A stretch of 64,000 nt of DNA from the sequence record MZ574432.2, one strand, 5' to 3'. Both the position numbers and the translations under genes were made by a program. Of this stretch, positions 16,956 to 29,307 are shown piece by piece. Positions within the stretch are counted from its first letter, which is position 1, and each line of letters opens with the position of its first letter. The notes beneath the pieces were generated by a model. The model made no database searches. It saw only the letters and a program-made list of their open reading frames with translations, and was not told where the DNA came from.

Positions 16956-17070
16956 GCGTAACTCTCCCTCAGGATCAGGACTGCGCCATCGACGCCAAAA
17001 CAGCGCCTGAGAAGGACGCTATGCCCGGCCCAAACCGGCGTCAACCGGCCAAAATGAAAAAATGACGCGT

Positions 17071-17105
17071 GTCAAGCACTACATCCCCGTGACGTAATTC
17101 TTGAC
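17071..17105. promoter_or_regulatory. Divergent promoters; plus-strand motif copy 2 (tgacg-taatt-cttgac, 17090-17105)
   Basis: TTGACA on both strands in the gap between divergent genes. Confidence 0.65.
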
Positions 17106-17156
17106 ATGGTTAATCCGTGAGCCTATCGTGCGGCTCCAGACTTCAGGAGTGCCGCT

Positions 17157-17465
17157 GTGACTGTCCGTGTTTATGCCCCCGATGGAGAGCCGTTCGACAT
17201 CCCAGCGCACCGGGAAGCCGATCTGCTGCTCTACAAGGGCTTCAGCCGGACGCCGCACGACCCCAACGCCGAGCCGATCGTCCAGGACGTTCCGGGCTAC
17301 CGCGCGCTCAAGCAGCGCGAGTGGGAAGAACTCGAAGCCGAACGCGACTACATCGCCGGCCAAGAGATCGACTTTGGCGCGCTGCTGGGCGGTGAGCCGA
17401 CCGTGCAGCCGATCGAGGAAGAACCCAAGCCCCGACCGCGTCGCCGCCGCAAGGCCGCCGCGTGA
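17157..17465 (+). CDS. Hypothetical protein, 102 aa, basic C-terminal tail
   Basis: GTG start with AGGAG SD; overlaps the next gene (GTGA). Confidence 0.7.
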   Translation: MTVRVYAPDGEPFDIPAHREADLLLYKGFSRTPHDPNAEPIVQDVPGYRALKQREWEELEAERDYIAGQEIDFGALLGGEPTVQPIEEEPKPRPRRRRKAAA

Positions 17466-17968
17466 GGGTCATCAACCTCTATGGCGGCCCAGGCGCTGGC
17501 AAGTCGACCACCAGGGCAGGCCTCTTCTATCAAATGAAGATGGCCCACCTCAAGGTCGAAGAAGCCCCTGAGTACGCCAAGGACCTGACCTACGAGAAGA
17601 ACTGGACGGCCCTGTCCAACCAGTGGCTCGTGATCGGCGAGCAGAACCATCGGCTCAACCGCCTGCGCGGGCAAGTCGACTACGCCGTCAGCGACAGCCC
17701 TCTGCCGCTGGGACTGATGTTCGCCACCCCGGCCTTCCAGACCGAGTGGTTCTCCGATGCTGTCTGGGGTCTCTACGACACCTACGACAACGTCAACGTG
17801 TTCATCGAGCGCGTCCAGCCCTATCAGGCGTTCGGGCGCAATCAGTCGGAAGATGAGGCACGCCTGATCGACCGAAAACTACGCCACCTGATGCGCGACC
17901 GGATCGACCTCTACGTCCCTGGCGACGAGAGCGCTCCGGCCCGGATCATGGGGTTCCTGGGCCTCTAA
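17462..17968 (+). CDS. P-loop NTPase/nucleotide kinase (NadR/AAA_28-like), 168 aa
   Basis: N-terminal INLYGGPGAGKST Walker A, EY..D, V.DSPL and GRNQ.E.EA..ID lid pattern. Confidence 0.8.
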   Translation: MRVINLYGGPGAGKSTTRAGLFYQMKMAHLKVEEAPEYAKDLTYEKNWTALSNQWLVIGEQNHRLNRLRGQVDYAVSDSPLPLGLMFATPAFQTEWFSDAVWGLYDTYDNVNVFIERVQPYQAFGRNQSEDEARLIDRKLRHLMRDRIDLYVPGDESAPARIMGFLGL

Positions 17969-17979
17969 GGCCCACCGGT

Positions 17980-18054
17980 GCGGCTATAGCTCAGTGGTAG
18001 AGCGCCTGCTTGCCATGCAGGAGGTCGAGGGTTCGAGCCCCTCTAGCCGCTCCA
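17980..18054 (+). tRNA. tRNA-Gly(GCC)
   Basis: Cloverleaf GCGGCTA/TAGCCGC, anticodon stem cctgc/gcagg, loop ttGCCat, U73, CCA. Confidence 0.95.
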
Positions 18055-18076
18055 TTCTAAGCACAAGGACAAGACT

Positions 18077-18337
18077 ATGAAATCGCGCGACTTCTGTTAT
18101 TGGCTCCAGGGCCTGTTCGAACTGCAAAACCCCGTGGTGATCAACGAGACCCAGACCCGCCTGATCAAGGCGCATCTGAACATGGTCTTCACCCACGAGA
18201 TCGACCCCAGCTTCCCGGCCGCCCAGCAGGCGGCGTTGAACGCCGATCACGAGGCCGGCAAGAAGCCCGCGTCGAAGAACAACGGCTTCTTCGAGATTGT
18301 CGATTCGGGCCGCCAAGAAGGCCTCATGCGCTGCTGA
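18077..18337 (+). CDS. Conserved phage hypothetical protein, 86 aa
   Basis: AAGGA SD; recurrent phage N-terminus M..RDFCYWLQG.FEL. Confidence 0.7.
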   Translation: MKSRDFCYWLQGLFELQNPVVINETQTRLIKAHLNMVFTHEIDPSFPAAQQAALNADHEAGKKPASKNNGFFEIVDSGRQEGLMRC

Positions 18338-18367
18338 CGCGGCGCCCACTTCCCAGGACAATTCATC

Positions 18368-18658
18368 ATGCAGACCGTCGACCTTCTGGGCGACGCGCCA
18401 TTCTGCGCGCGTCCAGGCTACCATCTGCGCGACTTCCGCAAGGGCGTACTGGGCGAGGCCTCCAAGGTCCGTGAGGAGACCGAGGAGTTCCTGGACGCCG
18501 TCGAGCAAGGCTCGCTGATCATGGCGTTGGTGGAGCTTTCCGATCTCCACGGCGCCATCGAAGCCTATCTGGCCAAGCATGCGCCGGGCGTCACCATGGA
18601 CGATCTCGCCCAAATGTCCGCCATCACCAAAAGGGCCTTCCGTCATGGACGTCGCTAG
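18368..18658 (+). CDS. MazG-like nucleotide pyrophosphohydrolase fold, 96 aa
   Basis: K..EE..E...A........ELSDL all-alpha NTP-PPase pattern. Confidence 0.65.
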   Translation: MQTVDLLGDAPFCARPGYHLRDFRKGVLGEASKVREETEEFLDAVEQGSLIMALVELSDLHGAIEAYLAKHAPGVTMDDLAQMSAITKRAFRHGRR

Positions 18659-19223
18659 CTGGAAACGCCTTTCGCAGGCGATCGAGTTCTACACCGCGCG
18701 CGGCTACACCTATGTCGACGCGCCCTGGGCCGTACGCCGGCCGGTCATGGACATGACCTGCCCGCGCCCCGATCTAGCCAGTCCTCTGGGCGAGAAGTTC
18801 CTGGTCGGTTCGGCCGAGCAGTCCTTCCTGGACCTGGAGATCGACGTCCTGGGCAAGGGACGCTTCGTGGCCTTGACGCCGTGTTTCCGCGTCGCCGATG
18901 AAGGCCGCTCACCGCTGCATGACGGCTACTTCATGAAGGTCGAGCTTTACGCCAATCTCACCGAGAACCGAGGGCGTGTCCTCAATCGCATGATCGACGA
19001 CGCCATGACCTGTTTCCGATCCTTCGGGGCCGGTGACCTGGACGTCTACAACACCTTCGAGCAGGACGCCAAGCTGACCCGCGACATCGTCATGCGCGGC
19101 GTGGAGATCGGCTCCTATGGCATGCGCACGCGTCGCCATCCCGTGCTCGACGAGGACCACACCTGGGTCTACGGCACTGGCCTTGCCGAACCGCGCTTCT
19201 CGCGCGCCCTCCAGCGCCTCTGA
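18645..19223 (+). CDS. Stand-alone class II aminoacyl-tRNA synthetase-like catalytic core, 192 aa
   Basis: Motif 2-like LTPCFRVADE...LHDGYFMKVELY and motif 3-like VYGTGLAEPRF; no anticodon-binding domain; ATG 18645 overlaps the upstream gene. Confidence 0.7.
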   Translation: MDVASWKRLSQAIEFYTARGYTYVDAPWAVRRPVMDMTCPRPDLASPLGEKFLVGSAEQSFLDLEIDVLGKGRFVALTPCFRVADEGRSPLHDGYFMKVELYANLTENRGRVLNRMIDDAMTCFRSFGAGDLDVYNTFEQDAKLTRDIVMRGVEIGSYGMRTRRHPVLDEDHTWVYGTGLAEPRFSRALQRL

Positions 19224-19234
19224 TTAGGATTTCA

Positions 19235-19258
19235 CGACACGCTGTCGTAATCCTTGAC
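19235..19258 (+). promoter_or_regulatory. Motif promoter (copy 3) with palindrome CGACA-N3-TGTCG
   Basis: cgaca-cgc-tgtcg-taatc-cttgac; predicted start site coincides with ATG 19290. Confidence 0.7.
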
Positions 19259-19289
19259 AAGCACGAATTTCTGTGAGACACGTCGCCTT

Positions 19290-19355
19290 ATGACCTTCTC
19301 GATCTTCCTTTTCCGAGAGACCGGCTCGCCGAGCCGAGATACCAGCGCCTCCTAG
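19290..19355 (+). CDS. Putative leader peptide 1 (MTFSIFLFRETGSPSRDTSAS, 21 aa)
   Basis: Apparently leaderless ATG at the predicted start site; overlaps alternative hairpins just before tRNA-Glu. Confidence 0.45.
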   Translation: MTFSIFLFRETGSPSRDTSAS

Positions 19356-19383
19356 GCTGCTGGTACGACGGCTCGCGCTATGT

Positions 19384-19460
19384 GGGCCTGTCTTCTAAAT
19401 GGACTAGGAATCTCGGCTTTCAATCGAGCAATGCGGGTTCGAGCCCCGTCAGGCCTACCA
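19384..19460 (+). tRNA. tRNA-Glu(UUC)
   Basis: GGGCCTG/CAGGCCT acceptor, loop ctTTCaa, TTCGA T-loop, CCA. Confidence 0.9.
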
Positions 19461-19484
19461 ACATCACAATCGAAAGCCACCCTG

Positions 19485-19560
19485 GGCTCTAGGGTGTGAA
19501 GGTTAGCAGCGCCGGCTTGTCAGGCCGGAGGAAGGGGTTCGAGTCCCCTTAGAGTCGCCA
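19485..19560 (+). tRNA. tRNA-Asp(GUC)
   Basis: GGCTCTA/TAGAGTC acceptor, stem ccggc/gccgg, loop ttGTCag, G73, CCA. Confidence 0.9.
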
Positions 19561-19808
19561 TTTGCCCAAGCGGGCACATCCAATCGAAAGCGCCGGGCAA
19601 GAGACTTAGCGGTCTCCAAGCGCCTGGGTCGAGCCAAAAACGCAGGGGTCGTCGGGTCCGCAAGGACAGCCCTGGTCAGTGAGCGATGGCGGATAAGAAA
19701 TGGGTCCCAACCTGCTGAAGGTGGTTGGCGCCGCCGAGGGCGTTACCTCGGATTTCACGTGACGACACTGCCCCACTGGCTTTTGCCATGCGCGTCCGTT
19801 GCTCTAGG
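19561..19808 (+). ncRNA. Candidate structured ncRNA (~250-290 nt) co-transcribed with tRNA-Glu/Asp
   Basis: No credible ORF; many short hairpins (GCAA-capped gtcc/ggac, gagac/gtctc, ccgagg/cctcgg), long-range gtcgtc/gacgac pairing, ends at a terminator. Confidence 0.5.
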
Positions 19809-19809
19809 A

Positions 19810-19848
19810 CCCCAGGACAGGCTAGCCCTCTCCTGGGGTTTCCTTTTT
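19810..19848 (+). terminator. Intrinsic terminator
   Basis: ccccagga...tcctgggg stem followed by tttcc-ttttt. Confidence 0.75.
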
Positions 19849-19888
19849 GTGGGACCCAAGAAATTTTTCACGGATTCGTGCATCGTTT

Positions 19889-19923
19889 CTTGACATCCTC
19901 TTGAGCCTGTGTCATAGGCTCAA
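19889..19923 (+). promoter_or_regulatory. Promoter of the large tRNA operon (CTTGACA; degenerate motif) overlapped by inverted repeat ttgagcct/aggctcaa
   Basis: TTGACA at 19890-19895 directly after a terminator; inverted repeat 19901-19923 covers the -10 region. Confidence 0.6.
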
Positions 19924-19969
19924 TCCTCAACAGCCCAGATCGGGCTTTCACTCCGCCGGAACAAGGTCC

Positions 19970-20089
19970 ATGACCCGCATCCATACCACGCTGACGACCG
20001 CCAAGCCCGCCTCCACCGGCGCGCTTACGCTCGCCTCGTGGCCGGCGTCGAGCAAGCCGCTATTGCGGCACTCAGCGGTTCTCGCCTAA
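19970..20089 (+). CDS. Putative leader peptide 2 (MTRIHTTLTTAKPASTGALTLASWPASSKPLLRHSAVLA, 39 aa)
   Basis: AAGG SD; 33/39 residues are amino acids of the 12 downstream tRNAs; end of ORF forms one arm of a long hairpin. Confidence 0.65.
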   Translation: MTRIHTTLTTAKPASTGALTLASWPASSKPLLRHSAVLA

Positions 20090-20214
20090 CAGGCGACCGC
20101 TCCGGGTGCCGCTTCTAAGCCGCACCCGATCTCTCCTCCGACACATCTTCCCAAAACGTCGTAGCTGAACCGGGTGCTCCTGATCTCTCAGGAGATCGCC
20201 ATCTATTTCAGTTT

Positions 20215-20290
20215 CGGTGTGTAGCTCAGTTGGTAGAGCACGGGGTTTGGGACCTCGGGGTCGGAGGTTCGAGCCCTCTTGCACCGACCA
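20215..20290 (+). tRNA. tRNA-Pro(UGG)
   Basis: CGGTGTG/TGCACCG acceptor, loop ttTGGga, CCA. Confidence 0.9.
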
Positions 20291-20360
20291 ATTCGCCCTC
20301 CGCCGGCCTTAGGCCGGACCGCGATCGCTTGAGCGTCGGCGGAGGCGTGTTCTTTGTCGT

Positions 20361-20439
20361 GCCGGTATAGCTCAGTCTGGTAGTCAGCGACTGCCTCGTA
20401 AGCAGTAGGTCCGGGGTTCGAATCCTCGTGCCGGCACCA
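20361..20439 (+). tRNA. tRNA-Thr(CGU)
   Basis: GCCGGTA/TGCCGGC, stem actgc/gcagt, loop ctCGTaa, CCA. Confidence 0.9.
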
Positions 20440-20483
20440 CCAAGAACACGATCAACAGAAGGATCAACAAGACACAGACTTTC

Positions 20484-20570
20484 GGGCGAGTAGCCGAGTG
20501 GTTAAAGGCACCTGACTCTTAATCAGGCGTGAGAAATCCTACGTGGGTTCGAATCCCACCTCGCCCTCCA
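20484..20570 (+). tRNA. tRNA-Lys(CUU) with atypical long variable arm
   Basis: GGGCGAG/CTCGCCC, stem cctga/tcagg, loop ctCTTaa, 15-nt variable region, U73, CCA; 87 nt. Confidence 0.85.
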
Positions 20571-20657
20571 TCGATAAAGACTTCCATGTTCCCGTACGGG
20601 AACATTTCGGCCAGGACAAGGGTCCTGGGATGGAAATGTTCCCGATCGGGATCACGG

Positions 20658-20744
20658 GCGGGTGTGGCGAAGTTGGTAGCCGCGCGAGTCTCAGGTACTC
20701 GTGGTCGAAAGGCCGGGGAGGTTCGAATCCTCTCACCCGCACCA
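20658..20744 (+). tRNA. tRNA-Leu(CAG)
   Basis: GCGGGTG/CACCCGC, stem cgagt/actcg, loop ctCAGgt, long variable arm, A73, CCA. Confidence 0.92.
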
Positions 20745-20756
20745 ACACTCCTCTGG

Positions 20757-20843
20757 GCGGCGCTGGCGGAATGGTAGACGCGCCGGCTTCAAGTCCCGTG
20801 TGTCCGTAAGGATGTCCGAGTTCGAATCTCGGGCGCCGCACCA
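20757..20843 (+). tRNA. tRNA-Leu(CAA), weak anticodon stem
   Basis: GCGGCGC/GCGCCGC, Leu-type D arm and variable arm, loop ttCAAgt; stem ccggc/cccgt has two mismatches. Confidence 0.75.
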
Positions 20844-20886
20844 AGACGAGGGTTGGCGATGGAAAGCGAAGGTCAAAGCGAGACGT

Positions 20887-20973
20887 GCGGAAGTGGCGTA
20901 ACGGTAGCCGCGCCAGACTGAGTATCTGGTGATCTAAAGGGTCGTGGAGGTTCGAGTCCTCTCTTCCGCACCA
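20887..20973 (+). tRNA. tRNA-Leu(GAG)
   Basis: GCGGAAG/CTTCCGC, stem ccaga/tctgg, loop ctGAGta, long variable arm, CCA. Confidence 0.92.
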
Positions 20974-21008
20974 AACACAAGGAGAGGTAAGAGACAGATT
21001 TGGTTTGT

Positions 21009-21080
21009 GCTGAAATGGCCTAGCGGTAAAGGCGCTGCATTGTGGATGCAGACACGATGGTTCGAATCCATCTTTCAGTG
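21009..21080 (+). tRNA. tRNA-His(GUG), no encoded CCA, no G-1
   Basis: GCTGAAA/TTTCAGT, stem ctgca/tgcag, loop ttGTGga; abuts tRNA-Ala with a 1-nt spacer. Confidence 0.85.
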
Positions 21081-21081
21081 C

Positions 21082-21157
21082 GGGGATATAGCTCAGTTGG
21101 TAGAGCAGTTGCTTTGCAAGCATCAGGTCGTCGGTTCGAGCCCGACTATCTCCACCA
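21082..21157 (+). tRNA. tRNA-Ala(UGC)
   Basis: GGGGATA/TATCTCC with G3:U70, loop ttTGCaa, CCA. Confidence 0.92.
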
Positions 21158-21222
21158 GACCAGGGGACCCAGGCTGCGGCGCCGGATCGGCGACCACCTG
21201 GGTCCGTGACAACAAGAAAACT

Positions 21223-21316
21223 GGAGGGCTGGCAGAGCCTGGGTTAATGCACCCGTTTCGAAAACGGGCAGGGGCTGAAAGGTCCCTCGGGGGTTCAAAT
21301 CCCTCGCCCTCCGCCA
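21223..21316 (+). tRNA. tRNA-Ser(CGA)
   Basis: GGAGGGC/GCCCTCC, stem cccgt/acggg, loop ttCGAaa, long variable arm, G73, CCA. Confidence 0.92.
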
Positions 21317-21335
21317 ACACCAAGCCGGCATCTTT

Positions 21336-21427
21336 GGAAGGATGGCTGAGCCGGCTGAAAGCACCCGCCTGGAAAGTGGGTCGACCTCACAAGGGTCGCG
21401 GGGGTTCGAATCCCTCTCCTTCCGCCA
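21336..21427 (+). tRNA. tRNA-Ser(GGA)
   Basis: GGAAGGA/TCCTTCC, loop ctGGAaa, long variable arm, G73, CCA. Confidence 0.92.
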
Positions 21428-21462
21428 GATACCGAGCCGGCGCGGATCGCCGGCCGAAGCTA

Positions 21463-21552
21463 GGTGGGTTGACCGAGTGGTAAGGTGCGCGGTTGCTAAC
21501 CGCAGGTCAGCCTGGAAGGGCTGCGGGGGTTCGATCCCCTCACCCACCGCCA
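21463..21552 (+). tRNA. tRNA-Ser(GCU)
   Basis: GGTGGGT/ACCCACC, loop ttGCTaa, long variable arm, G73, CCA. Confidence 0.92.
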
Positions 21553-21567
21553 TAGCTTCGACGATGC

Positions 21568-21644
21568 AGGGGTGTAGCTCAACTGGCTAGAGCGTCGGTC
21601 TCCAAAACCGAAGGTTGCGGGTTCGAGTCCCGCCGCCCCTGCCA
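21568..21644 (+). tRNA. tRNA-Trp(CCA)
   Basis: AGGGGTG/CGCCCCT, stem tcggt/accga, loop ctCCAaa, G73, CCA. Confidence 0.92.
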
Positions 21645-21666
21645 ACATTTTCCGCGATTCAGGACC

Positions 21667-21945
21667 ATGACCAAGAAAGGAGGACCCCTGATGAAACCCG
21701 CACCCACTATGACCCAATGCCGCTTGACGCGCGGTGACCAGGGCGTCCAAGTCTCCTGGATTCCCAGCGAGTTCGCCCAGGTCGGCCGCATCGTCGATCT
21801 GAAGGAAAAGGACTACTGGTCCAACGGCTGGCGGGTCGACCAGACCTGGGGCACCATGGACGCCAGCGTGATCGCCGATCGCAGTCGAGATCACCTCAAC
21901 CACAGCAAGGCCACCGGCGATCGATGGCCCACCGCCCGCGCCTAG
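21667..21945 (+). CDS. Hypothetical protein, 92 aa (start could be 21691)
   Basis: AGGA and GGAGG SD sites; last ORF before a terminator. Confidence 0.7.
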   Translation: MTKKGGPLMKPAPTMTQCRLTRGDQGVQVSWIPSEFAQVGRIVDLKEKDYWSNGWRVDQTWGTMDASVIADRSRDHLNHSKATGDRWPTARA

Positions 21946-21948
21946 CGC

Positions 21949-21982
21949 AAAAAGGCCGCCCAGGTCTCCCTGGGCGGCCTTT
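21949..21982. terminator. Bidirectional terminator
   Basis: aaaaaggccgcccagg-tct-ccctgggcggccttt between convergent genes. Confidence 0.8.
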
Positions 21983-21988
21983 CACGTT

Positions 21989-22489
21989 CTAGGCGTGTGG
22001 TGGGAAGTCACCCGTCAGGACGCCCGCCGTGCGCGCGTAGCAGAACCAGTAGGAGCCGGTCCAGCGCAGCATGGCCACTTCGGGGACATGCACGGCCTCG
22101 ACAAGGCGTTGATAGCCTGTGCCATCGCCCTCAGTATCCGCTTTGCCGTCCATATCCACATCAGGCTGCGAGGCCTGGGGAACCTGTAAGGTCAGAGCCG
22201 CCGAAACATCGGAGAAGACGATGCGAGGGTTTGCGACCCCGTAGTGAGGACGTGCGAAGACGACAACCTGAGAGGAGCCAAAGGCCGTATTTGTCCTCGG
22301 ATAGAACTGAAGCTGAAGCTCATCGCCGACTTCCGTCGCCGGCATGAGCGAAGCGTAGAAGGACCCTTGAAACGGTTGATCGGGATCGACTTGCTTCGTG
22401 TAGATGTCGATGATGCCGACCTCGCCATTGGCGTTCAGGATTTCGGCGGCGGCCTCGTAGACCGTGTTGATGACGATGGTTCTGGACAT
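21989..22489 (-). CDS. Hypothetical protein, 166 aa (paralog 1 of a tandem pair)
   Basis: Shares HYGVANPRIVF, D.DGKAD.EGDG.GYQRL and LRWTGS.WFCYAR with 22510-22995. Confidence 0.8.
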   Translation of the reverse strand: MSRTIVINTVYEAAAEILNANGEVGIIDIYTKQVDPDQPFQGSFYASLMPATEVGDELQLQFYPRTNTAFGSSQVVVFARPHYGVANPRIVFSDVSAALTLQVPQASQPDVDMDGKADTEGDGTGYQRLVEAVHVPEVAMLRWTGSYWFCYARTAGVLTGDFPPHA

Positions 22490-22509
22490 GTGTCTGGTTA
22501 CCCTAGGCT

Positions 22510-22995
22510 TTAGAGTGAGAGGCTGTCAGTGGTCATCATGCCGAGCGAGCGGGCATAACAGAACCAGAACGAGCCCGTCCACCGAAGGAGTGCAACGAGA
22601 GGGACGCCGGGGGCTTCGCCCAAGCGCTGGTAGCCAGGACCATCACCCTCGACGTCAGCCTTGCCGTCGAAGTCCAGGTCTTTCTGCTCTATCGCACCCG
22701 CGTACAGAGCCATAGCATCTGTGATGTTCGGCGCACGATCAGCGAAAACGATCCTCGGGTTGGCCACACCATAGTGCGGCAAGGCGAAGATCAGCACGGT
22801 AGCGAAGCTACCCTTGCTGGCGGGGAAGACCTGAACCTGGAGGTCGTCTCCGACCTCTCGACCGGGAGCGAGGGCGGCGTAGAGAAAGCCACCACCGATT
22901 TCAGGAATGATGTTGATCACCCCTTTGAGGCCGTTGGGATTTATCGGCTCAGCTAATTGCCGTTCGGTGGCGCGCACCAGCACGTTCATCGCCAT
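22510..22995 (-). CDS. Hypothetical protein, 161 aa (paralog 2)
   Basis: ATG at 22995 with AAGGA SD; homology to paralog 1 begins here, so the listed 23265 start is too long. Confidence 0.8.
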   Translation of the reverse strand: MAMNVLVRATERQLAEPINPNGLKGVINIIPEIGGGFLYAALAPGREVGDDLQVQVFPASKGSFATVLIFALPHYGVANPRIVFADRAPNITDAMALYAGAIEQKDLDFDGKADVEGDGPGYQRLGEAPGVPLVALLRWTGSFWFCYARSLGMMTTDSLSL

Positions 22996-23115
22996 CGGGA
23001 GTCTATCCTTAGGAAGGCCGGCCCAGCGCCGGCAAAGCTCCCTACCCGATCTAGGAACACCGATCGACCCAAGATCGCAAACTATCCACAGCAACTTTTG
23101 CGACAGTCTAACGAC

Positions 23116-23143
23116 AAAAAGAAAGGCTCCCGAAGGAGCCTTC
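23116..23143 (-). terminator. Terminator for the minus-strand gene 23504-23148
   Basis: Minus strand ggaaggctcc-TTCG-ggagcctttc-ttttt. Confidence 0.7.
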
Positions 23144-23147
23144 CAAA

Positions 23148-23504
23148 TCACGCCATCGCTGCGTTGCGTTTCCCGCGCTGCTTTTCCAACGCGGCCTCCA
23201 TCGACTGCCAAACGAGCCGAGGCCGCCACGGCTCCTCGTTGTAAGGCGTGTCCAGGTAGCACCACCCCTCGCTAGGGGTCGCCAGGATCGGAAGACCTTC
23301 GAAGTCTTCGTCCTGCTGCTCCTCGGGGGTCAAACGCCGCGTCGACCAACGCAACCCGCCGCTCGGCAGCTTGGCGAATTCCAGGCCGCTAGGATCGCGG
23401 TCCTCGTCGAGGATGTCGAAGAGTTCGATGAGGTCCTGGGCATTGACCAGGAAGGCCTCGGTCTGTTCGTCGGGATTGATCGCCCGCACGAGATAGAGCG
23501 CCAT
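23148..23504 (-). CDS. Hypothetical acidic protein, 118 aa
   Basis: ATG 23504 with AAAGGAG SD (MALYLVRAINPDEQTEAFLV...). Confidence 0.75.
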   Translation of the reverse strand: MALYLVRAINPDEQTEAFLVNAQDLIELFDILDEDRDPSGLEFAKLPSGGLRWSTRRLTPEEQQDEDFEGLPILATPSEGWCYLDTPYNEEPWRPRLVWQSMEAALEKQRGKRNAAMA

Positions 23505-23591
23505 GGGTGTCTCCTTTATTGGCAAAGCCAAGGTGGGAGACAAGGACCGGGTTGTCCAGGCACTATAGTGCTGAAAAGATGTCCAGACACG

Positions 23592-23618
23592 AAAAAGGAC
23601 TCCCGAAGGAGCCCCTTG
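23592..23618 (-). terminator. Terminator closing the minus-strand non-coding unit
   Basis: Minus strand ggggctcc-TTCG-ggagtcc-ttttt. Confidence 0.75.
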
Positions 23619-23629
23619 CGTAGGGTTCA

Positions 23630-24462
23630 AAGGCTTGAGACACTAGGGCCTTCACGACGAGACCTCAGGGATTATCCTTGTTCAGGTTCCCCTGGGTGTC
23701 CAGGAGCCTTTCGGCTTCTCTGTCCCGCCAACGACGGTCATTTTAGGTCCACCACAGACCGTCCTGATGTACTACTCAGCCTCTCCACTACCATCAAAGG
23801 CTGGCCGGCCCTCAAAGGAAGCTTCCTGACACTCGTTACGACACCTTGCGAGGTCCCGCAACGTCCCTGCTAAGCCGAAGCCCAGGGAACGTAGTCGTCT
23901 ATTGCACACCAGCGGCCAGACTTTCGCTTTTGCTTCGTCAGCCAAATGATGATTGGAGGTTGGTTTACGCCCCCAGCTTGCCTTCCCTAGTGACGACGTG
24001 CTGTCCAGAGCTTCGTGGCTTTTGGCCACAAAATACTCGACGCCGTCCTGATCCCTAGATGGGACCGATCTGATCCGATTTCCCCTCCAGGTGCTTTTCA
24101 CACCCAGCTTGGAACCCAGAACAAATTGGGTCTCGCCCTAAGCCGGTATCACTCCGACCTCGAACTGTCGCAGATAGCTGTCGCTGATCCGCCCCCTACA
24201 CCTGAATCCTCGTCCACTCGGTCGTTTTGAGTTGACATGTCCGGTGGTTCTCAGGCCACACCAGAGCGTCTCACGACGCCTTTCGAACACATCACGACCT
24301 CATCGACTATCCTCCACCCCCGCTTTTAACGGGCTATGAAGGACGGGCTGGTTAGACCCGGTCTTCGATGCCTGCTTGAGTGGTCCCGGTTGCCCAGGCG
24401 ACGAGGGGTAGGTCCCCCGCCCAGCCTCCGAGTTGCCCCGGCGGCCCCGCTCTCAAGCGATG
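23630..24462 (-). ncRNA. Candidate large structured ncRNA (~830 nt; size and context recall the GOLLD class)
   Basis: Promoter-to-terminator unit with no credible ORF; many GNRA/UUCG-capped hairpins on the minus strand; 5'/3' ends complementary (GCUUGAGA/UCUCAAGC). Confidence 0.65.
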
Positions 24463-24468
24463 ACTGGG

Positions 24469-24499
24469 TTGTAGACGGACGATTTCCGGCGGTCAACAG
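24469..24499 (-). promoter_or_regulatory. Minus-strand sigma70-type promoter (TTGACC-N16-CTACAA)
   Basis: Reverse complement of ttgtag-acggacgatttccggc-ggtcaa; back-to-back with the plus-strand motif promoter. Confidence 0.55.
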
Positions 24500-24534
24500 C
24501 CAAATCGCACTTTTTTCGAAAAAGTTTCGATCGG

Positions 24535-24558
24535 CGTCGCGATGACGCGTTTCTTGAC
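24535..24558 (+). promoter_or_regulatory. Motif promoter (copy 4) with palindrome CGTCG-N3-TGACG
   Basis: cgtcg-cga-tgacg-cgttt-cttgac. Confidence 0.7.
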
Positions 24559-24589
24559 CCGCCCTTCGCGATCAGGCAGAACCATCGGC

Positions 24590-24918
24590 GAGGGCGCCAC
24601 GCGTAGTGGAAGAATCCGTGATCCCGCCCAAGGCGACGCCGCGTATCGACCTACGGTCATGCGCAATAGGCCGACCCTAAGCCGCATCGCGTCGACTACC
24701 TGCATGCTCCAGGCACTGAGCAAATCCCGGTCCGGCGGACATCCCACGAAGCTGGTGGAGATAACCGGAGGTTACCGTTCCTGTGGAGCGGATGGAAGGA
24801 AGGGTCTCAGTCGAGCCCTGGTAGGCCGTCCAGCCAGTAGCGCTGCTGTCTGGGTCCGGGACCGCCCAATCGACGACTCGCGAAAAGAGCCCGGCTGGTT
24901 TCGCGGCTGGCCGGGCTC
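24590..24918 (+). ncRNA. Candidate structured RNA or long 5' leader (~330 nt)
   Basis: Follows a motif promoter; multi-helix junctions (cgacgc/gcgtcg, tcccggtcc/gggtccggga, agggtctc/gagccct); ends in hairpin gagcccggc/gccgggctc. Confidence 0.45.
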
Positions 24919-24927
24919 ACTAACCGC

Positions 24928-25263
24928 TTGAGAACCCTCATGATCGACAACACCTTCATCCAGGCCGACGGCCCGCTCTATCTGACGCTGGAAGCGGCCC
25001 TGGAGGCGCCCGGCGCGATCTACACCCACGTCAAGAAGGGCGGCATCTATCGCCGTATGGGTGAGGCCAAGTACGCCGGCGACGCGGCGGCCCAGACGCT
25101 GGAAGGCGTGATGATGGCCGTCTATGAGCACCTCTACCCATACGCGCACTCCTTCTTTGTGCGTCCTCAAAGTGAGTTTGTCGAGGTCGTGCGGACCCAG
25201 CATGGCGAGCACCGCCGTTTCGTCTTTCACACCAATGAGATACTGACCGTTCTCGACACTTGA
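24928..25263 (+). CDS. DUF1653-like protein, 111 aa
   Basis: Y.H.KKGG.Y.....A........MAVY..LY......FVRP.SEF...V......RF pattern. Confidence 0.7.
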   Translation: MRTLMIDNTFIQADGPLYLTLEAALEAPGAIYTHVKKGGIYRRMGEAKYAGDAAAQTLEGVMMAVYEHLYPYAHSFFVRPQSEFVEVVRTQHGEHRRFVFHTNEILTVLDT

Positions 25264-25300
25264 GGGTACGTGAGACCCCATACCGTGCCCTGCGGCATGG

Positions 25301-25316
25301 TGACGCAATCCTTGAC
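25301..25316 (+). promoter_or_regulatory. Motif promoter (copy 5)
   Basis: tgacg-caatc-cttgac upstream of the cadherin-repeat gene. Confidence 0.7.
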
Positions 25317-25365
25317 TTGGCCTACGATCTAGGGTAGAGACGAGACCCTCTCTCCCAAGGAAATC

Positions 25366-27090
25366 GTGATGCTCAAGCCGCAAGCCTCTTCGCGGCGCGC
25401 GCGCCTCGCGCCCGCGTCGATCCCCATCATTCCGGCTGACATCGCCCTGGTCGGCGCGGTCATCCCCGCCGGCAGTCCGGCCGGGACCCTGGTCGGCACG
25501 CTGAGCGCGCTACCGGCCGCCGGCGACTACGAGTTCACCCTACTCGACAGCGCGGGCGGGCGCTTTGCCATTCAGGGCTCGGCCCTGGTCGCGGGCGCCA
25601 CGCCTTCGGCCGGTGGGGAGAACCCGACGATTACCGTGCGCACCACGGCGGCGTTCTCGCGACTGACGTTCGACAAGACCTTCTCGATCGCTGTCCAGAC
25701 CGTCGTCGCCCCGATCACGCTGTCGCCGACCAATCCGACCGTCGCCGAGAACACTGCTGCCGGCGTGACGGTCGCGTCGATTTCCTCGCCCGGCGCGACC
25801 TTGAGCCTGACCGACAATGCCGGCGGCCGGTTCGCCATCAGCGGGACCAATCTGGTCACCGGCGCGACGGCGACCAACTATGAGGTGGCCACCAGCCACG
25901 ATGTGACCATCCGCGCCGAGTATAACGGCGATGTGACGACCAAGACCGTGACGGTCCAGGTCTCCAACGTCGTCGAGATCACCAATATCACCCTGGCCGC
26001 CAGCAGCATCCCCGAGAACTCGGCCGCCGGCGTGGTCGTCGGGCAACTGGCCTCGGTCCCGCCCGGTGCGGCCCTGACCCTGACCGACAGCGCCGGCAGC
26101 CGCTTTGCCATCGACGGCAGCAACCGTCTCGTGGCTGGCTCGGTCGCCACGGACTACGAGACCAACACCACACACGACGTCTCCGTGCGCGCCACCCAAG
26201 GCCCCGACGTCTACAACAAGACCTTCACCATCAGCGTCACCAACGTCAATGAACTGACCGACATCACCCTGTCGGCCAATTCGATCGCCGAGAACTCGGC
26301 CGCTGGCGTCGTGGTCGGCAACCTCGCCAGCGTGATCCCCGGCGCCTCGTTCGCTGTGACCGGCCAGACGCCGTCAGGGACCTACTTCACCGTCAACGGC
26401 TCCAACCAGCTTGTGACTGGGGCGACGGCGACCAACTTCGAAGTCAATGCCAGCCACTCGGTCACCGTCACCGCGACCAAGGGCACCGACACCTTCCAAA
26501 AGACCTTCACGATCAACGTCAGCAACCAGACCGAGATCACCGACATCAGCCTGAGCAACGCCAGTATCAACGAAGGTGTCGCCCAGGGCACCGCCGTCGG
26601 CACCCTGTCGTCGACCCCGACGGGCGCGACCTTCTCCTTGGCGCCAACCAACCCTGCGGGCACGCGCTTCCAGGTCTCGGGCACGACGCTGCAACAAGGC
26701 GCGACGCCGAACGATCGCGAAGCCACGCCGACCGTGACGGTGAAGATTCGCGGCACGCGCCAGAGCGAAACCTTCGACAAGGATTTCGTCATCACCATCA
26801 ACAACGTCGTCGAACTGACCGACTTCACGCTGTCGGGCCTGACGATCGACGAGAACGCCGTCCAGGGCACTCCGGTGGGGACGCTGTCGTCGACCCCGAC
26901 GGGCGCGACCTACACCCTGAACGACAATGCCGGCGGGCGCTTCCAGCTTGTCGCCGGCGCCATCCAGGCCGGCGCGGTGGCGACCGACTTCGATACCGCC
27001 ACCAGCCACGACATCATCGTCACAGCCTCCCGAGGCGGCGAGACGATGCAGAAGACCTTCACGATCACGGTCAACGACCTCGGCGACTAG
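25366..27090 (+). CDS. Cadherin-like repeat protein, 574 aa
   Basis: About six ~95-aa repeats (ITL...SI.EN.A.G..VG.L.S...GA...L.D.AG.RF.I.G..L..GA..T(N/D)YE....H.V.VRAT......KTFTI.V.NV.E). Confidence 0.85.
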   Translation: MMLKPQASSRRARLAPASIPIIPADIALVGAVIPAGSPAGTLVGTLSALPAAGDYEFTLLDSAGGRFAIQGSALVAGATPSAGGENPTITVRTTAAFSRLTFDKTFSIAVQTVVAPITLSPTNPTVAENTAAGVTVASISSPGATLSLTDNAGGRFAISGTNLVTGATATNYEVATSHDVTIRAEYNGDVTTKTVTVQVSNVVEITNITLAASSIPENSAAGVVVGQLASVPPGAALTLTDSAGSRFAIDGSNRLVAGSVATDYETNTTHDVSVRATQGPDVYNKTFTISVTNVNELTDITLSANSIAENSAAGVVVGNLASVIPGASFAVTGQTPSGTYFTVNGSNQLVTGATATNFEVNASHSVTVTATKGTDTFQKTFTINVSNQTEITDISLSNASINEGVAQGTAVGTLSSTPTGATFSLAPTNPAGTRFQVSGTTLQQGATPNDREATPTVTVKIRGTRQSETFDKDFVITINNVVELTDFTLSGLTIDENAVQGTPVGTLSSTPTGATYTLNDNAGGRFQLVAGAIQAGAVATDFDTATSHDIIVTASRGGETMQKTFTITVNDLGD

Positions 27091-27093
27091 CAG

Positions 27094-27119
27094 AAAGCCC
27101 GGCTCCGGCCGGGCTTTTT
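27094..27119 (+). terminator. Intrinsic terminator
   Basis: aaagcccggc-tccg-gccgggcttttt. Confidence 0.85.
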
Positions 27120-27194
27120 CGTTGACGGCGTCATTGCGCCGCTTATGGTGGCCTCACGGCGGAGAGATCGCGCCGTTCAGAAGGAGAAACCACC

Positions 27195-27728
27195 ATGACC
27201 ATGATCGTCAAGATCATGACGGGCCATGACCTGCCCGACGATTCCCCCTACAAGACCTTCACCCTGGTGTCCGAAGTCAAGAGCGCGACATTCCACACCC
27301 AGGAAGACAGTGAGGGCCGGCGCCACTCCTACATGCGCGCCTACATCGCTGATCCGGTCAAGACCGCCGAGGTCCCCGGTTTCAGCGAGCACGAAGTGGT
27401 CTATGACATCCCGCCCAACGTCAACGTCTACGTGATGAACGGCAACGGCAAGACCATCTCGTCCTGGACCGCGCCGCCCGTGGCCGAGGGAAAGTTCACC
27501 TTTTCCGCTTCGGCGCCGATCAAATTTGTCGACGTCAGCCGTGACACCCTCTACGGGCGCATGGAAGCCTACTGCAAATATCGGGCAAATGGGTTCACCG
27601 CGATCAAGGCTGCCCTGGCCAGCGGCTTTCCTGATCCGACCAAGGTGATCGACGCGCTGGAAGCCGACCCACTCCTCATCTCCAGGATCGAGGAACTTTC
27701 GGCCCAGGCGTCCACCTCGACGACCTAG
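27195..27728 (+). CDS. Hypothetical protein, 177 aa
   Basis: AAGGAG SD, phage-typical codon usage. Confidence 0.8.
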   Translation: MTMIVKIMTGHDLPDDSPYKTFTLVSEVKSATFHTQEDSEGRRHSYMRAYIADPVKTAEVPGFSEHEVVYDIPPNVNVYVMNGNGKTISSWTAPPVAEGKFTFSASAPIKFVDVSRDTLYGRMEAYCKYRANGFTAIKAALASGFPDPTKVIDALEADPLLISRIEELSAQASTSTT

Positions 27729-27754
27729 GCCGGACGGGCCTGTCGAAAAACACG

Positions 27755-27802
27755 CGTCACGATGTCGTATTTCTTGACAGGCCCAAAAGCCTCCTGTATA
27801 AG
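27755..27802 (+). promoter_or_regulatory. Motif promoter (copy 6), palindrome CGTCA-N3-TGTCG, TTGACA-N17-TATAAG
   Basis: Near-consensus -35 (27774-27779) and -10 (27797-27802); predicted start site at ATG 27810. Confidence 0.85.
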
Positions 27803-27809
27803 CCCCGTT

Positions 27810-27908
27810 ATGAGCAAGTCGTATCGCCAATTTGTGCGCCAGATTCAGTTCGTCCGAGTTAATCGGGCGGGCCGTTCGCGCATGGATGATGGTGGGACCC
27901 GAGTGTAG
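27810..27908 (+). CDS. Putative leader peptide 3 (MSKSYRQFVRQIQFVRVNRAGRSRMDDGGTRV, 32 aa)
   Basis: Leaderless ATG at the predicted start site; codons 5-18 are all readable by the 8 downstream tRNAs; contains an antiterminator strand. Confidence 0.7.
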   Translation: MSKSYRQFVRQIQFVRVNRAGRSRMDDGGTRV

Positions 27909-27937
27909 GGTCCAAAGACCTCTCAATCCATTTCTGC

Positions 27938-27980
27938 GAAGGCCCGCCCAGGTAACCCCTCGGCGGGCCTTCTGCGTTTT
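27938..27980 (+). terminator. Attenuator-like terminator upstream of tRNA cluster 2
   Basis: gaaggcccgcc...ggcgggccttc-tgcgtttt; the 5' arm can instead pair with 27865-27879 inside the leader ORF. Confidence 0.65.
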
Positions 27981-28036
27981 CACCCTTCGTTTTCATCCGG
28001 TAGCGAGCGAGATCATGACCGGAAACTAACCCCTTC

Positions 28037-28126
28037 GGGTCGGCAGGTGGGCACTGGCATGAGCCCAAGGGACTGTAACTCCCCCGTCGAAAGGCTGTGT
28101 AGGTTCGAGTCCTACCCGACCCACCA
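28037..28126 (+). tRNA. tRNA-Tyr(GUA), atypical acceptor/D-arm connector
   Basis: GGGTCGG/CCGACCC, loop ctGTAac, long variable arm, A73, CCA; 5 nt rather than 2 before the D stem. Confidence 0.75.
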
Positions 28127-28159
28127 TTCTTCCGTGGAGCCCGAGTAAACGGCCTCTGC

Positions 28160-28231
28160 GCTTCAGTAGCTCAGTGGTAGAGCGCCGTCTTGACATGGCG
28201 GAGGTCGAAGGTTCGAACCCTTCCTGAAGCA
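28160..28231 (+). tRNA. tRNA-Val(GAC), no encoded CCA
   Basis: GCTTCAG/CTGAAGC, loop ttGACat; 1-nt spacer to tRNA-Ile. Confidence 0.9.
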
Positions 28232-28232
28232 C

Positions 28233-28308
28233 GCTAGGTTAGCTCAGTTGGTAGAGCACCGGACCGATAATCCGGTTGTCACAGGTTCGAGCCCTGTACC
28301 TAGCACCA
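28233..28308 (+). tRNA. tRNA-Ile(GAU), C33
   Basis: GCTAGGT/ACCTAGC, stem ccgga/tccgg, loop ccGATaa, CCA. Confidence 0.88.
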
Positions 28309-28313
28309 AACAC

Positions 28314-28388
28314 TTATACGCTTTACCGTATAAAGTAAAAATATACGATCTAGCGTATAAAATGACTTGAACTTACCGAATTCGGTAA
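28314..28388. repeat. AT-rich cluster of three inverted repeats
   Basis: ttatacg-N6-cgtataa (28314-28333), tatacg-N6-cgtata (28342-28359), ttaccgaattcggtaa (28373-28388). Confidence 0.8.
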
Positions 28389-28423
28389 ATAAAAAGAGGT
28401 GAACAGAGGAAAGGACAAGTAAC

Positions 28424-28498
28424 GGGCCGGTAGCTCAGTGGTAGAGCGCTGCTGTCACATAGCAGATGTCGAGTGTTCGAGACACTCCCGGCCCACCA
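28424..28498 (+). tRNA. tRNA-Val(CAC)
   Basis: GGGCCGG/CCGGCCC, stem ctgct/agcag, loop gtCACat, CCA. Confidence 0.88.
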
Positions 28499-28505
28499 GT
28501 TCAGT

Positions 28506-28579
28506 TGAAGCATGGTGTAATGGTAGCACATCAGAGTTTGGTTCTGGGAGTCTAGGTTCGAGTCCTAGTGCTTCAGCCA
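28506..28579 (+). tRNA. tRNA-Gln(UUG)
   Basis: TGAAGCA/TGCTTCA, loop gtTTGgt, G73, CCA. Confidence 0.88.
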
Positions 28580-28633
28580 ACTGAAAGAGTTTCAGGTCTC
28601 ATGTGACGAGATCAGGAGAGAGAAGGCGAGTTT

Positions 28634-28708
28634 TTCCGAGTAGCTCAGCGGTAGAGCAGCGTGCTGTTAACACGACGGTCGGTGGTTCGATCCCACCCTC
28701 GGGAGCCA
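28634..28708 (+). tRNA. tRNA-Asn(GUU)
   Basis: TTCCGAG/CTCGGGA, loop ctGTTaa, G73, CCA. Confidence 0.92.
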
Positions 28709-28723
28709 TTACTTCTTCTCCAC

Positions 28724-28802
28724 GCCCGGTTAGCTCAGCGGAATTAAGAGCAGACGCCTACGAAGCGTAAGGTCGGGGGTTCGAATCCCTCACCGGGTGC
28801 CA
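28724..28802 (+). tRNA. tRNA-Arg(ACG)
   Basis: GCCCGGT/ACCGGGT, loop ctACGaa, CCA. Confidence 0.9.
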
Positions 28803-28831
28803 TTTTCACGTATGCAGTGCTTCGGCCCTGC

Positions 28832-28906
28832 GGGGATGTAGCTCAGTGGTAGAGCGGGAGACTGAAAATCTCCGCGTCGGTGGTTCGACCCCACCCTTCC
28901 CCACCA
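28832..28906 (+). tRNA. tRNA-Phe(GAA)
   Basis: GGGGATG/CTTCCCC (one U-U), stem ggaga/tctcc, loop ctGAAaa, CCA. Confidence 0.9.
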
Positions 28907-28926
28907 GTTCTCGGTGACCGCGAGGC

Positions 28927-28960
28927 GGCCGTCAGGATGTTCGATCCTGGCGGCCTTTTT
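28927..28960 (+). terminator. Intrinsic terminator of tRNA cluster 2
   Basis: ggccgtcaggat-gttcg-atcctggcggcc-ttttt. Confidence 0.85.
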
Positions 28961-29046
28961 CATGCCCGTGGTTCAGTGAACGTCGGCCTCTCGACATTGA
29001 GGCGAGTTCTGGATTAGGTAAAACGTCAGGATGTATTTACGACCCA

Positions 29047-29070
29047 CGTCACCGTGACGCAAATCTTGAC
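29047..29070 (+). promoter_or_regulatory. Motif promoter (copy 7) with palindrome CGTCA-N3-TGACG
   Basis: cgtca-ccg-tgacg-caaat-cttgac. Confidence 0.75.
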
Positions 29071-29208
29071 ATCTATCAGAGCTTCCCCTACCCTGCAAGC
29101 ACATTTTCAATGGCTCAAGTCGGGGACGAGAGCATGGCCCATGCCCATCAGCGTCCTCCCGAAGCGGCCTCGGAGGAAACCGAGCAAACGCCGCAAAGGA
29201 CAAATGCC

Positions 29209-29304
29209 ATGAAGACGCTCATTGAGCGCCTGCGAGCGGCCCACCTGGAGGCCGAAGCCGAGCGCGTTGCCCAGTACCTGTCCGCGCAAGCCTTGGAGGC
29301 CTAA
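29209..29304 (+). CDS. Small helical protein, 31 aa (MKTLIERLRAAHLEAEAERVAQYLSAQALEA)
   Basis: AAAGGA SD before ATG 29209, in frame with the listed 29110 ORF. Confidence 0.45.
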   Translation: MKTLIERLRAAHLEAEAERVAQYLSAQALEA

Positions 29305-29307
29305 GCT

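Follow-up and report, generated by a model that had tools for sequence, protein, structure and literature searches.

The attenuators of amino-acid operons (trp, his, leu, thr, ilvGMEDA and ilvBN) combine a promoter-proximal short open reading frame (ORF), whose codons are linked to the product of the operon, with mutually exclusive hairpins and an intrinsic terminator placed before the first gene; a ribosome halted at the regulatory codons shifts the balance towards the antiterminator. A comparable arrangement was encountered here in phage DNA, namely a 39-codon leader ORF at positions 19970-20089 (+ strand) of a stretch of 64,000 nucleotides (nt) from record MZ574432.2, referred to as the window, in which it lies between a TTGACA promoter and tRNA-Pro, the first gene of a 12-tRNA operon. 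This ORF is probably part of a ribosome-mediated (leader-peptide) transcription attenuator controlling the phage tRNA operon. The short ORF typical of such attenuators is present (ATG at 19970, AAGG, promoter at 19890, tRNA-Pro at 20215) and so, at the amino-acid level, are the regulatory codons, with a codon-level excess that is not significant. The intrinsic terminator is canonical in the relatives, and the effect of stalling was derived from folding simulations. Unlike the attenuators of amino-acid operons, the phage leader would regulate tRNAs, the very products it consumes, and not enzymes; its sampling extends to eight amino acids and 12 tRNA species within some 28 codons instead of a run of one to three amino acids, it is located in a phage genome, and its terminator is weak in the window phage. 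The closest likeness is found with ilvGMEDA and ilvBN, the leaders of which mix several amino acids.

With regard to target class, the nearest system is pheMST of Escherichia coli, in which the leader peptide PheM controls phenylalanyl-tRNA synthetase by attenuation. Both cases concern leader-peptide attenuation of a gene of the translation apparatus and sensing of charged tRNA, but the pheMST target is a synthetase for one amino acid, whereas the output of the phage leader would be a tRNA pool and its sensor is matched to a multi-tRNA array. T-box riboswitches also sense tRNA status and switch between terminator and antiterminator before translation-related genes. They bind uncharged tRNA directly, without translation, through a Stem I specifier loop and a conserved T-box sequence, whereas the sensor of the phage leader is an in-frame ORF. 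No T-box, riboswitch or other Rfam family was matched in 19900-20214 (cmscan of 17000-30000, E-value up to 1), and the leader at 19970-20089 is not a T-box. Ordinary tRNA operons, such as those of phage T4 and E. coli processed by RNase P and RNase E, share a promoter, a 5' leader of a few hundred nt and a polycistronic tRNA precursor; to our knowledge, their leaders have not been described as encoding matched peptides or attenuators. In a full-text literature search (not all journals covered), no case of tRNA genes preceded by a leader peptide or an attenuator was retrieved, and neither is mentioned in the phiCbK genome paper (PMC3556154).

Composition and conservation of the leader ORF

The 12 tRNA genes occupy 20215-21644 (+ strand; ARAGORN and Rfam tRNA matches) and carry the anticodons Pro-UGG, Thr-CGU, Lys-CUU, Leu-CAG/CAA/GAG, His-GUG, Ala-UGC, Ser-CGA/GGA/GCU and Trp-CCA. 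The leader ORF translates to MTRIHTTLTTAKPASTGALTLASWPASSKPLLRHSAVLA, ends with TAA and is labelled in GenBank as a hypothetical protein (gp135 in phage C1, gp144 in CcrSC, gp149 in CcrBL9). The initial annotation had described TTGACA at 19890, an AAGG ribosome-binding site and a peptide made of the amino acids of the downstream tRNAs, all of which could be read directly in the sequence. Thirty-three of its 39 residues are Pro, Thr, Lys, Leu, His, Ala, Ser or Trp, all eight being present, and within codons 5-32 (19982-20065), taken as the regulatory core, the proportion rises to 27 of 28. Each of the codons CUG, UUG, CUC, CUU, UCG, UCC, AGC, ACG, AAG and UGG listed in that annotation was likewise found. 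The match between leader and cluster lies at the amino-acid level and not demonstrably at the codon level.

These eight amino acids account for 48 % of residues in six-frame ORFs of the window. The comparison with short ORFs, proposed as a check of the composition, yielded only one other ORF out of 260 (30-60 amino acids, window) attaining the 33/39 fraction, and this one was off-frame within a large gene. The 27/28 segment was unique among 50,127 peptide windows. Composition was also evaluated by a maximal-segment log-odds score, applied to the non-identical upstream regions (497) of tRNA clusters at the loci collected for the analysis, with cluster sets permuted among units and reverse-strand ORFs serving as null. 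The leader scored about 15; permuted sets reached at least 14 only 0.3 times per 497 units and the reverse strand never did. Seventeen real units scored at least 12, whereas the reverse strand provided none and permutation an average of 1.1.

Positions 19600-21700 were 100 % identical to Caulobacter phages C1, C2, J4 and BL47, members of genus Bertelyvirus (subfamily Dolichocephalovirinae) with genomes of about 311-327 kb and host C. vibrioides CB15; the window thus belongs to a Bertelyvirus, a jumbo phage of Caulobacter. Phages CcrSC and CcrBL9 display the same order of the 12 tRNAs and were about 87 % identical to the window overall, a level well exceeded by the leader ORF (98 % to both) and by the hairpins located 3' of it (98-100 %, with 94 % for the last one at 20166-20200). 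Spacers were only 43-82 % and several tRNAs only 74-88 % identical. Leader ORF and hairpins were conserved to the same level as the best-conserved tRNAs of the cluster. The ORF differs by no more than two substitutions (Thr to Pro; CUU to CUG), which both remain within the matched set. When compared with shuffled sequences, the leader fold gave z = -5.

The putative promoter (19887-19919, + strand) consists of TTCTTGACA at 19887-19895, including the -35 hexamer TTGACA at 19890-19895, followed by block CCTGTGTCATAGGC with the extended -10-like TGTCATAGG at 19910-19918. Both the -35 hexamer and this block were unchanged across C1, CcrSC and CcrBL9, while flanking DNA was 62-65 % identical. The Shine-Dalgarno-like AAGG (19963-19966, + strand) lies 3 nt 5' of the ATG in a block, CTCCGCCGGAACAAGGTCCATG, invariant in the three Bertelyviruses. 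The extended form TYCTTGACA occurs five times in the window versus 0.5 expected, always on the + strand, and three of the five copies are found just 5' of the three leader ORFs described here.

Leaders of related phages and sibling leaders in the window

In other genera, a small ORF of 39-45 codons directly precedes the syntenic cluster at its first tRNA-Pro. The position of this ORF is kept in five lineages, i.e. Bertelyvirus, Colossusvirus, Kikimora, the phiCbK-like phages and the IMG/VR contig L138, with a distance of 114-125 nt from stop codon to tRNA. These leaders had to be located by synteny, because tblastn with E-values up to 10 did not link the peptides between genera and only returned copies from the same genus. 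The leader reads MTFLTHKPSTLKPATGAASLAHASLLTPATSKPSLSRSL in CcrPW and CcrColossus (one residue different in the latter), VTKLSHKLSLHSTAATALSTLAHAPATLSPKSPTTGGVTSATETI in Brevundimonas phage Kikimora and MFALSHNSLSTKAASPASLSLALLATATKPSTKPTTSASHSTDHL in the phiCbK-like phage Magneto, where it corresponds to gp080. Global identities between genera were 28-51 %, while 85-95 % of leader residues belonged to the set (binomial P from 8e-7 to 5e-12). What the genera have in common is composition rather than sequence or structure.

Comparison with relatives having other clusters had been suggested as a check, and leader composition indeed followed cluster content. The Bertelyvirus leader is alone in containing Trp, just as the Bertelyvirus cluster is alone in ending with tRNA-Trp; the Trp-Gly-Gly group to which this tRNA belongs in Colossus, Kikimora and Magneto is separate. 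Contig L138 (IMGVR_UViG_3300001199_000001; 279 kb, guanine-cytosine (GC) content of 55 %), retrieved by a tightened IMG/VR sequence pattern for the long-arm tRNA-Lys, displays the tRNA order of Bertelyvirus broken into three units, and a separate TTGACA promoter and leader precede each of them. The leader of unit 1, MITKTTTPMTMKPTKPVGLSLRALKEQEPGG (MITKTTTPMTMKPTKP..., TKPM), precedes Pro(CGG), Pro(UGG), Pro(GGG), Met, Thr(GGU), Thr(CGU), Thr(UGU) and Lys, and includes the Pro codons CCA, CCC and CCG and the Thr codons ACC, ACA and ACG. That of unit 2, MFTNAHTLLLLSDAFAASLVARAFGVKR (...TLLLLS...), precedes five tRNA-Leu and spells its LLLL as UUA UUG CUA CUU, while that of unit 3, MIKTATHSSAHSSAASAASSTAARAVSASASSLS (...THSSAHSSAASAASS..., HSA), precedes His, three Ala and four Ser tRNAs. 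The single long Bertelyvirus leader looks like the sum of the three L138 leaders, and this split appears to be the strongest case for co-variation of leader and cluster.

The window contains 22 tRNA genes detected by ARAGORN and arranged in three groups. The second of the leaders discussed here, leader 3, is encoded at 27810-27908 (MSKSYRQFVRQIQFVRVNR...), 5' of Val, Ile, Val, Gln, Asn, Arg and Phe tRNAs, in a region (27740-28920) 100 % identical to BL47 and 99.9 % to C1. It contains an in-set run of 15 residues, compared with a maximum of eight elsewhere, and has a homologue in Magneto. As already noticed in the initial annotation, its core (YRQFVRQIQFVRVNR) has no residue type in common with the core of the leader at 19970-20089. 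The promoter of leader 3 reads TTGACA-N17-TATAAG (region 27771-27975); a canonical terminator at 27938-27972 is followed by UGCGUUUUC, and GGGCGGGCC within the ORF is complementary to the 5' arm of this terminator. The remaining small ORF (MTFSIFLFRETGSPSRDTSAS; 19290-19355) lies 3' of TCCTTGACA and 5' of tRNA-Glu/Asp (region 19251-19355). It comprises 20-21 codons, and its homologues in all lineages retain RE...RD.

Several tRNA-like genes were noticed in the window and in relatives. At about 28038-28124 (+ strand) of the window, a gene missed by ARAGORN displays a 7-bp acceptor stem, a T-arm, a terminal CCA and a long variable arm; its anticodon loop, CUGUAAC, contains GUA (Tyr) and its only Rfam match was a weak one to tRNA-Sec (29.6 bits). 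A Tyr codon is found just 5' of the RQFV core of leader 3. In relatives, non-canonical tRNA-like genes missed by detection programs are located at L004:3714-3787 and 3793-3863, L006 ~3624-3696 and 3700-3772, and L127:4668-4741, 4746-4815 and ~5324-5397. They include Thr(GGU)-like genes as well as Thr(CGU)-like ones, in which the anticodon loop (UUUCGUAGU or UUUCGUAAU) comprises 9 nt and the stems differ by compensatory changes; Magneto carries a His(GUG)-like gene. The phiCbK genome paper reported Thr and Tyr tRNAs as absent and His as present only in Colossus (PMC3556154). Since the leaders contain Thr, His and Tyr codons, they point to such hidden genes. Identified by eye, the Thr-, His- and Tyr-like genes remained unconfirmed by Rfam, which gave only weak tRNA-Sec or reverse-strand matches, and their assignment as tRNAs is tentative.

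Alternative RNA structures and the proposed switch

Between the core of the leader and tRNA-Pro, predicted folds offered several alternative pairings. In minimum-free-energy folds, the ORF end (20065-20078) pairs with 20097-20112, in agreement with the earlier proposal that it pairs with the segment after the stop codon, and the resulting long helix (20065-20112, + strand) encloses a hairpin at the stop codon (20082-20096). This region is 98-100 % conserved among Bertelyviruses and, according to the folding model, the helix can form only when the ORF end is free of ribosome. A hairpin between CGGGUGC (20103-20109) and GCACCCG (20122-20128) was obtained when the A site was placed at the stop codon. 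This pairing, also anticipated in the initial annotation, was thus recovered in predicted folds, but the idea that it acts as terminator was abandoned: no U-tract follows 3' of the hairpin, and its Magneto homologue, UCGGGUGC...GCCGCACCCG, lies 5' of a separate canonical terminator. More likely, hairpin 20103-20128 (+ strand) blocks an antiterminator and would form when the ribosome masks the ORF end.

The proposed antiterminator (20122-20177, + strand; predicted folds) pairs the same GCACCCG with a second CGGGUGC at 20171-20177. Its loop is formed by a C-rich spacer (20131-20165) containing CUUCCCAAAAC, which is only 43-46 % identical among Bertelyviruses yet C-rich throughout, and a CUCCCAAA-like motif is found in the antiterminator loop of all lineages. 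A better candidate for the terminator than hairpin 20103-20128 is GGUGCUCCUGA-UCUC-UCAGGAGAUCGCC at 20173-20200 followed by AUCUAUUUCAGUUU, a weak structure (20173-20214, + strand) ending one base 5' of tRNA-Pro. The pattern scan attributed to it a 7-bp stem and five T in eight positions. In the chain of alternative pairings, its stem joins 20173-20183 to 20188-20200. Kikimora, Magneto and L138 display a canonical terminator (GC-rich hairpin and U-run) immediately 5' of the first tRNA, together with an upstream segment complementary to the 5' arm of this terminator.

Masking of the ORF end by the ribosome was simulated by placing the ribosome at each codon, folding only the RNA 3' of it and recording the probability of the basal pairs of the terminator. 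This procedure replaced equilibrium folding of the whole leader with a masked ribosome, in which implausible long-range pairs dominated. In CcrPW, the terminator probability was at least 0.87 at the last six codons and mostly at most 0.1 upstream. In Magneto, it was close to 0 at codons 7-16, 0.83 at codon 35 and at least 0.9 from codon 36 on, and in L138 it fell as low as 0.16 at the K-P codons, which make up segment 1. For leader 3 of the window, it was 0 only at codons 12-15 (0.13 at codon 11) and 0.99 beyond codon 20. For the leader at 19970-20089, values at codons 8-29 were mostly at most 8 %, apart from codons 15-16 and 22-23 (15-35 %), and codons 30-34 and 38-40 gave 0.3-0.8. The simulation thus showed a trend in the expected direction for this leader, but a noisy one in partial agreement with the anticipated effect of masking; the trend was clean in CcrPW, Magneto, L138 and leader 3. 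In these models, a stall in the core favours read-through, a direction that agrees with classical attenuation.

According to the mechanism we propose, host RNA polymerase would start at the TTGACA promoter near 19925, and a ribosome would translate the 39-codon leader, of which codons 5-32 demand almost exclusively the eight amino acids of the cluster. With ample charged tRNAs, the ribosome would reach the ORF end or stop codon and cover 20065-20078, so that hairpin 20103-20128 would form and sequester GCACCCG; the full stem 20173-20200 could then fold before the U-rich tail and some transcripts would stop before tRNA-Pro. If any of the sampled tRNAs were scarce, the ribosome would stall in the core and the ORF end would pair with 20097-20112. 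GCACCCG would in this case be free to engage the second CGGGUGC (20171-20177); the terminator stem would lose its base and transcription would read through into the 12 tRNAs. Such a circuit would constitute negative feedback, because the tRNA products relieve the stall, and an OR gate over 12 tRNA species.

The attenuation by a cluster-matched leader put forward in the initial annotation is supported by position, by co-variation of composition, by the terminators of relatives and of leader 3 and, partially for this leader, by the masking folds. Based on sequence comparison with relatives, the role of the leader as sensor can be regarded as established. The sequences show the ORF, its composition and conservation, the co-variation with the cluster and the alternative pairings; translation of the leader, direction of the switch, termination at the weak terminator of this phage and regulation of the tRNA operon are what we infer. 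Intrinsic termination is the most likely output in the window phage, although the weakness of terminator 20173-20200 leaves room for other read-outs.

A number of observations weigh against this attenuator. Codon-anticodon matching showed no excess, 22 of the 33 in-set codons being strictly decodable versus 22.6 expected from synonymous usage, and was discarded as evidence for the leader; only the spread of Leu codons was unusual (five different codons among six, P = 0.004). ACC and GCC, each present four times, are unreadable by CGU or UGC under standard wobble. The terminator of the window is non-canonical, with an internal loop in the lower stem and an interrupted U-tract as tail, and those of CcrPW and Colossus are likewise weak. 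The equilibrium masking simulation was noisy for the leader at 19970-20089, with terminator probabilities near zero at codons 35-37, and did not reproduce the attenuation logic for Kikimora. In the tRNA-Glu/Asp leader, only 28-34 nt separate the stop codon from tRNA-Glu, which is too short for a classical terminator; not all leaders need therefore work alike. Finally, the near-identity of Bertelyvirus leaders could partly stem from recent recombination, because some tRNAs of the cluster are also 100 % identical.

Among other explanations, the translated leader might sense the same tRNAs while acting, in the manner of a tna-like leader, through Rho access to the C-rich, G-poor spacer 20131-20165, or through RNase E/RNase P processing or stability; in the processing variant, a long hairpin (20157-20214) would abut the 5' end of tRNA-Pro. 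The weak or interrupted U-tracts of Bertelyvirus and Colossusvirus, the persistence of a C-rich spacer despite its low sequence conservation, the pairing of AGCUGAA (20161-20167) with UUCAGUU (20208-20214) beside the tRNA 5' end and the lack of space for a terminator after the Glu/Asp leader all fit such an output. We consider it rather unlikely, since the homologous leaders of Kikimora, Magneto and L138 are followed by canonical intrinsic terminators in the equivalent position. Moreover, a C-rich tract of only about 35 nt is short for a rut site, and a stalled, uncoupled ribosome normally raises Rho termination, opposite to a useful feedback.

The sensor itself could also be questioned. A structured untranslated RNA, acting in tRNA-precursor processing or stability or by T-box-like anticodon pairing with an incidental ORF, would account for nucleotide-level conservation that includes synonymous sites and reaches about 20 nt 5' and 40 nt 3' of the ORF, for the strong predicted structure and for the modest Shine-Dalgarno sequence. 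It is however quite improbable given that frame, start and stop are kept at 114-125 nt from the tRNA in five lineages with barely alignable DNA, that matched codons are confined to one frame, that composition instead of sequence or structure is conserved between genera and that no Rfam family, T-box included, matches the leader. Least credible is a coincidental resemblance to the tRNA set, either of a small peptide rich in Ser, Thr, Ala and Pro that has a function of its own or of an ORF arisen by chance in GC-rich DNA. P, T, A, S and L are indeed common in GC-rich off-frame ORFs, one of which attains the same fraction in the window, the codon-level match is no better than synonymous usage and GenBank lists a hypothetical protein. 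Against this stand the two other leader families of the window, which match different, non-overlapping tRNA sets, the exact division of the amino-acid set by transcription unit in L138, the excess of high-scoring real units over both nulls and the absence of peptide sequence conservation between genera.

Surrounding features and significance of tRNA leaders

The 12-tRNA unit appears to be separated from the upstream tRNA-Glu/Asp unit by a terminator-like hairpin and T-run at 19824-19850 (+ strand; AGCCCTCTCCTGGGGTT then TCCTTTTTGT; pattern scan), which marks the end of the latter. Directly 3' of tRNA-Trp lies a small annotated coding sequence at 21691-21945 (+ strand; gp136 in C1). It is probably co-transcribed with the tRNA operon, because the interval 21644-21691 contained no + strand terminator in the pattern scan. 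A full-length match to GOLLD RNA (RF02032; model 1-416, 104.4 bits, E = 4.6e-27) was obtained at positions 23631-24048 (- strand), about 2 kb past the operon; its score is under the family gathering score of 150.

Some of the tRNA genes were themselves atypical. tRNA-Lys(CUU) at 20484-20570 is 87 nt long and displays a long variable arm (type-II shape), unusual for Lys; type-II tRNA-Lys genes are also found at L004:3990-4079, L006:3813-3899 and L127:4851-4937, and 34 IMG/VR contigs, among them phages of 26-45 % GC, contain the long-arm shape with an identical T-arm. tRNA-Thr(CGU) at 20361-20439 is 79 nt long with an enlarged D-region (agctcagtctggtagtcagcga). Conservation of the tRNAs within the cluster follows a mosaic pattern with respect to CcrSC and CcrBL9: identity is lowest for tRNA-Pro and tRNA-Thr (74-82 %) and reaches 97-100 % with either phage for tRNA-Lys, Leu(CAG) and Leu(GAG), while for tRNA-Ala it amounts to 100 % with CcrSC and 79 % with CcrBL9. 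In CcrSC and CcrBL9, a tRNA-Thr(GGU) is located directly 3' of tRNA-Gly (L002:666-738, L003:919-991). This gene is missing in the window (cf. 18055-18076), yet the leader ORF at 19970-20089 has four ACC codons.

Matched leaders may also exist outside Caulobacter phages. A low-GC IMG/VR contig, L013, encodes FDFAFFAAEADE (1398-1487) 5' of Phe, Glu, His, Asp and Ala tRNAs, and TTGTTYQPKQYTQGG (10670-10774) 5' of Pro, Gln, Tyr, Thr and Gly tRNAs, each followed by a canonical terminator; both leader regions (1398-1540 and 10670-10830) share an upstream promoter-like motif, ACTTTTAGTATATTTGCATATATTTAAT. Matched leader ORFs were also observed before tRNA clusters of the unrelated low-GC contigs L028 (5382-5447), L079, L009, L026 and L140. 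In the low-GC subset, composed of contigs retrieved with the tRNA-Lys pattern, scores of at least 10 were reached by nine real units versus none on the reverse strand and a mean of 2.3 after permutation (maximum of seven in 50 permutations), which is suggestive of a wider distribution.

A broader proposal would be that tRNA arrays of many unrelated phages carry self-referential leader-peptide sensors, in which a mini-ORF per unit spells the amino acids of its tRNAs and, in places, isoacceptor codons, the tRNAs being made only when the host pool of those species limits. The leaders would then also serve as a key to non-canonical tRNAs missed by programs. The evidence leaves us evenly divided about this generalization. 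If such sensors were widespread, the shortage in the host pool could follow, for example, cleavage by host anticodon nucleases.

The reason for phage tRNA genes and their control has been debated for decades. Codon compensation and, lately, escape from tRNA-cleaving defences were proposed as their roles (PMC10264068, PMC11555353, PMC12409363). The present case most likely represents a known mechanism with a new target, leader-peptide attenuation being applied to tRNA genes, and such leaders are possibly widespread in phages. They could be used to delimit tRNA transcription units, to predict hidden non-canonical tRNAs and to search across all phage genomes, and the circuit is testable in a laboratory model, Caulobacter crescentus with phiCbK-like phages. 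If true, leader-peptide attenuation would extend from biosynthetic enzymes to tRNA genes, and the phage would measure tRNA supply and respond to it.

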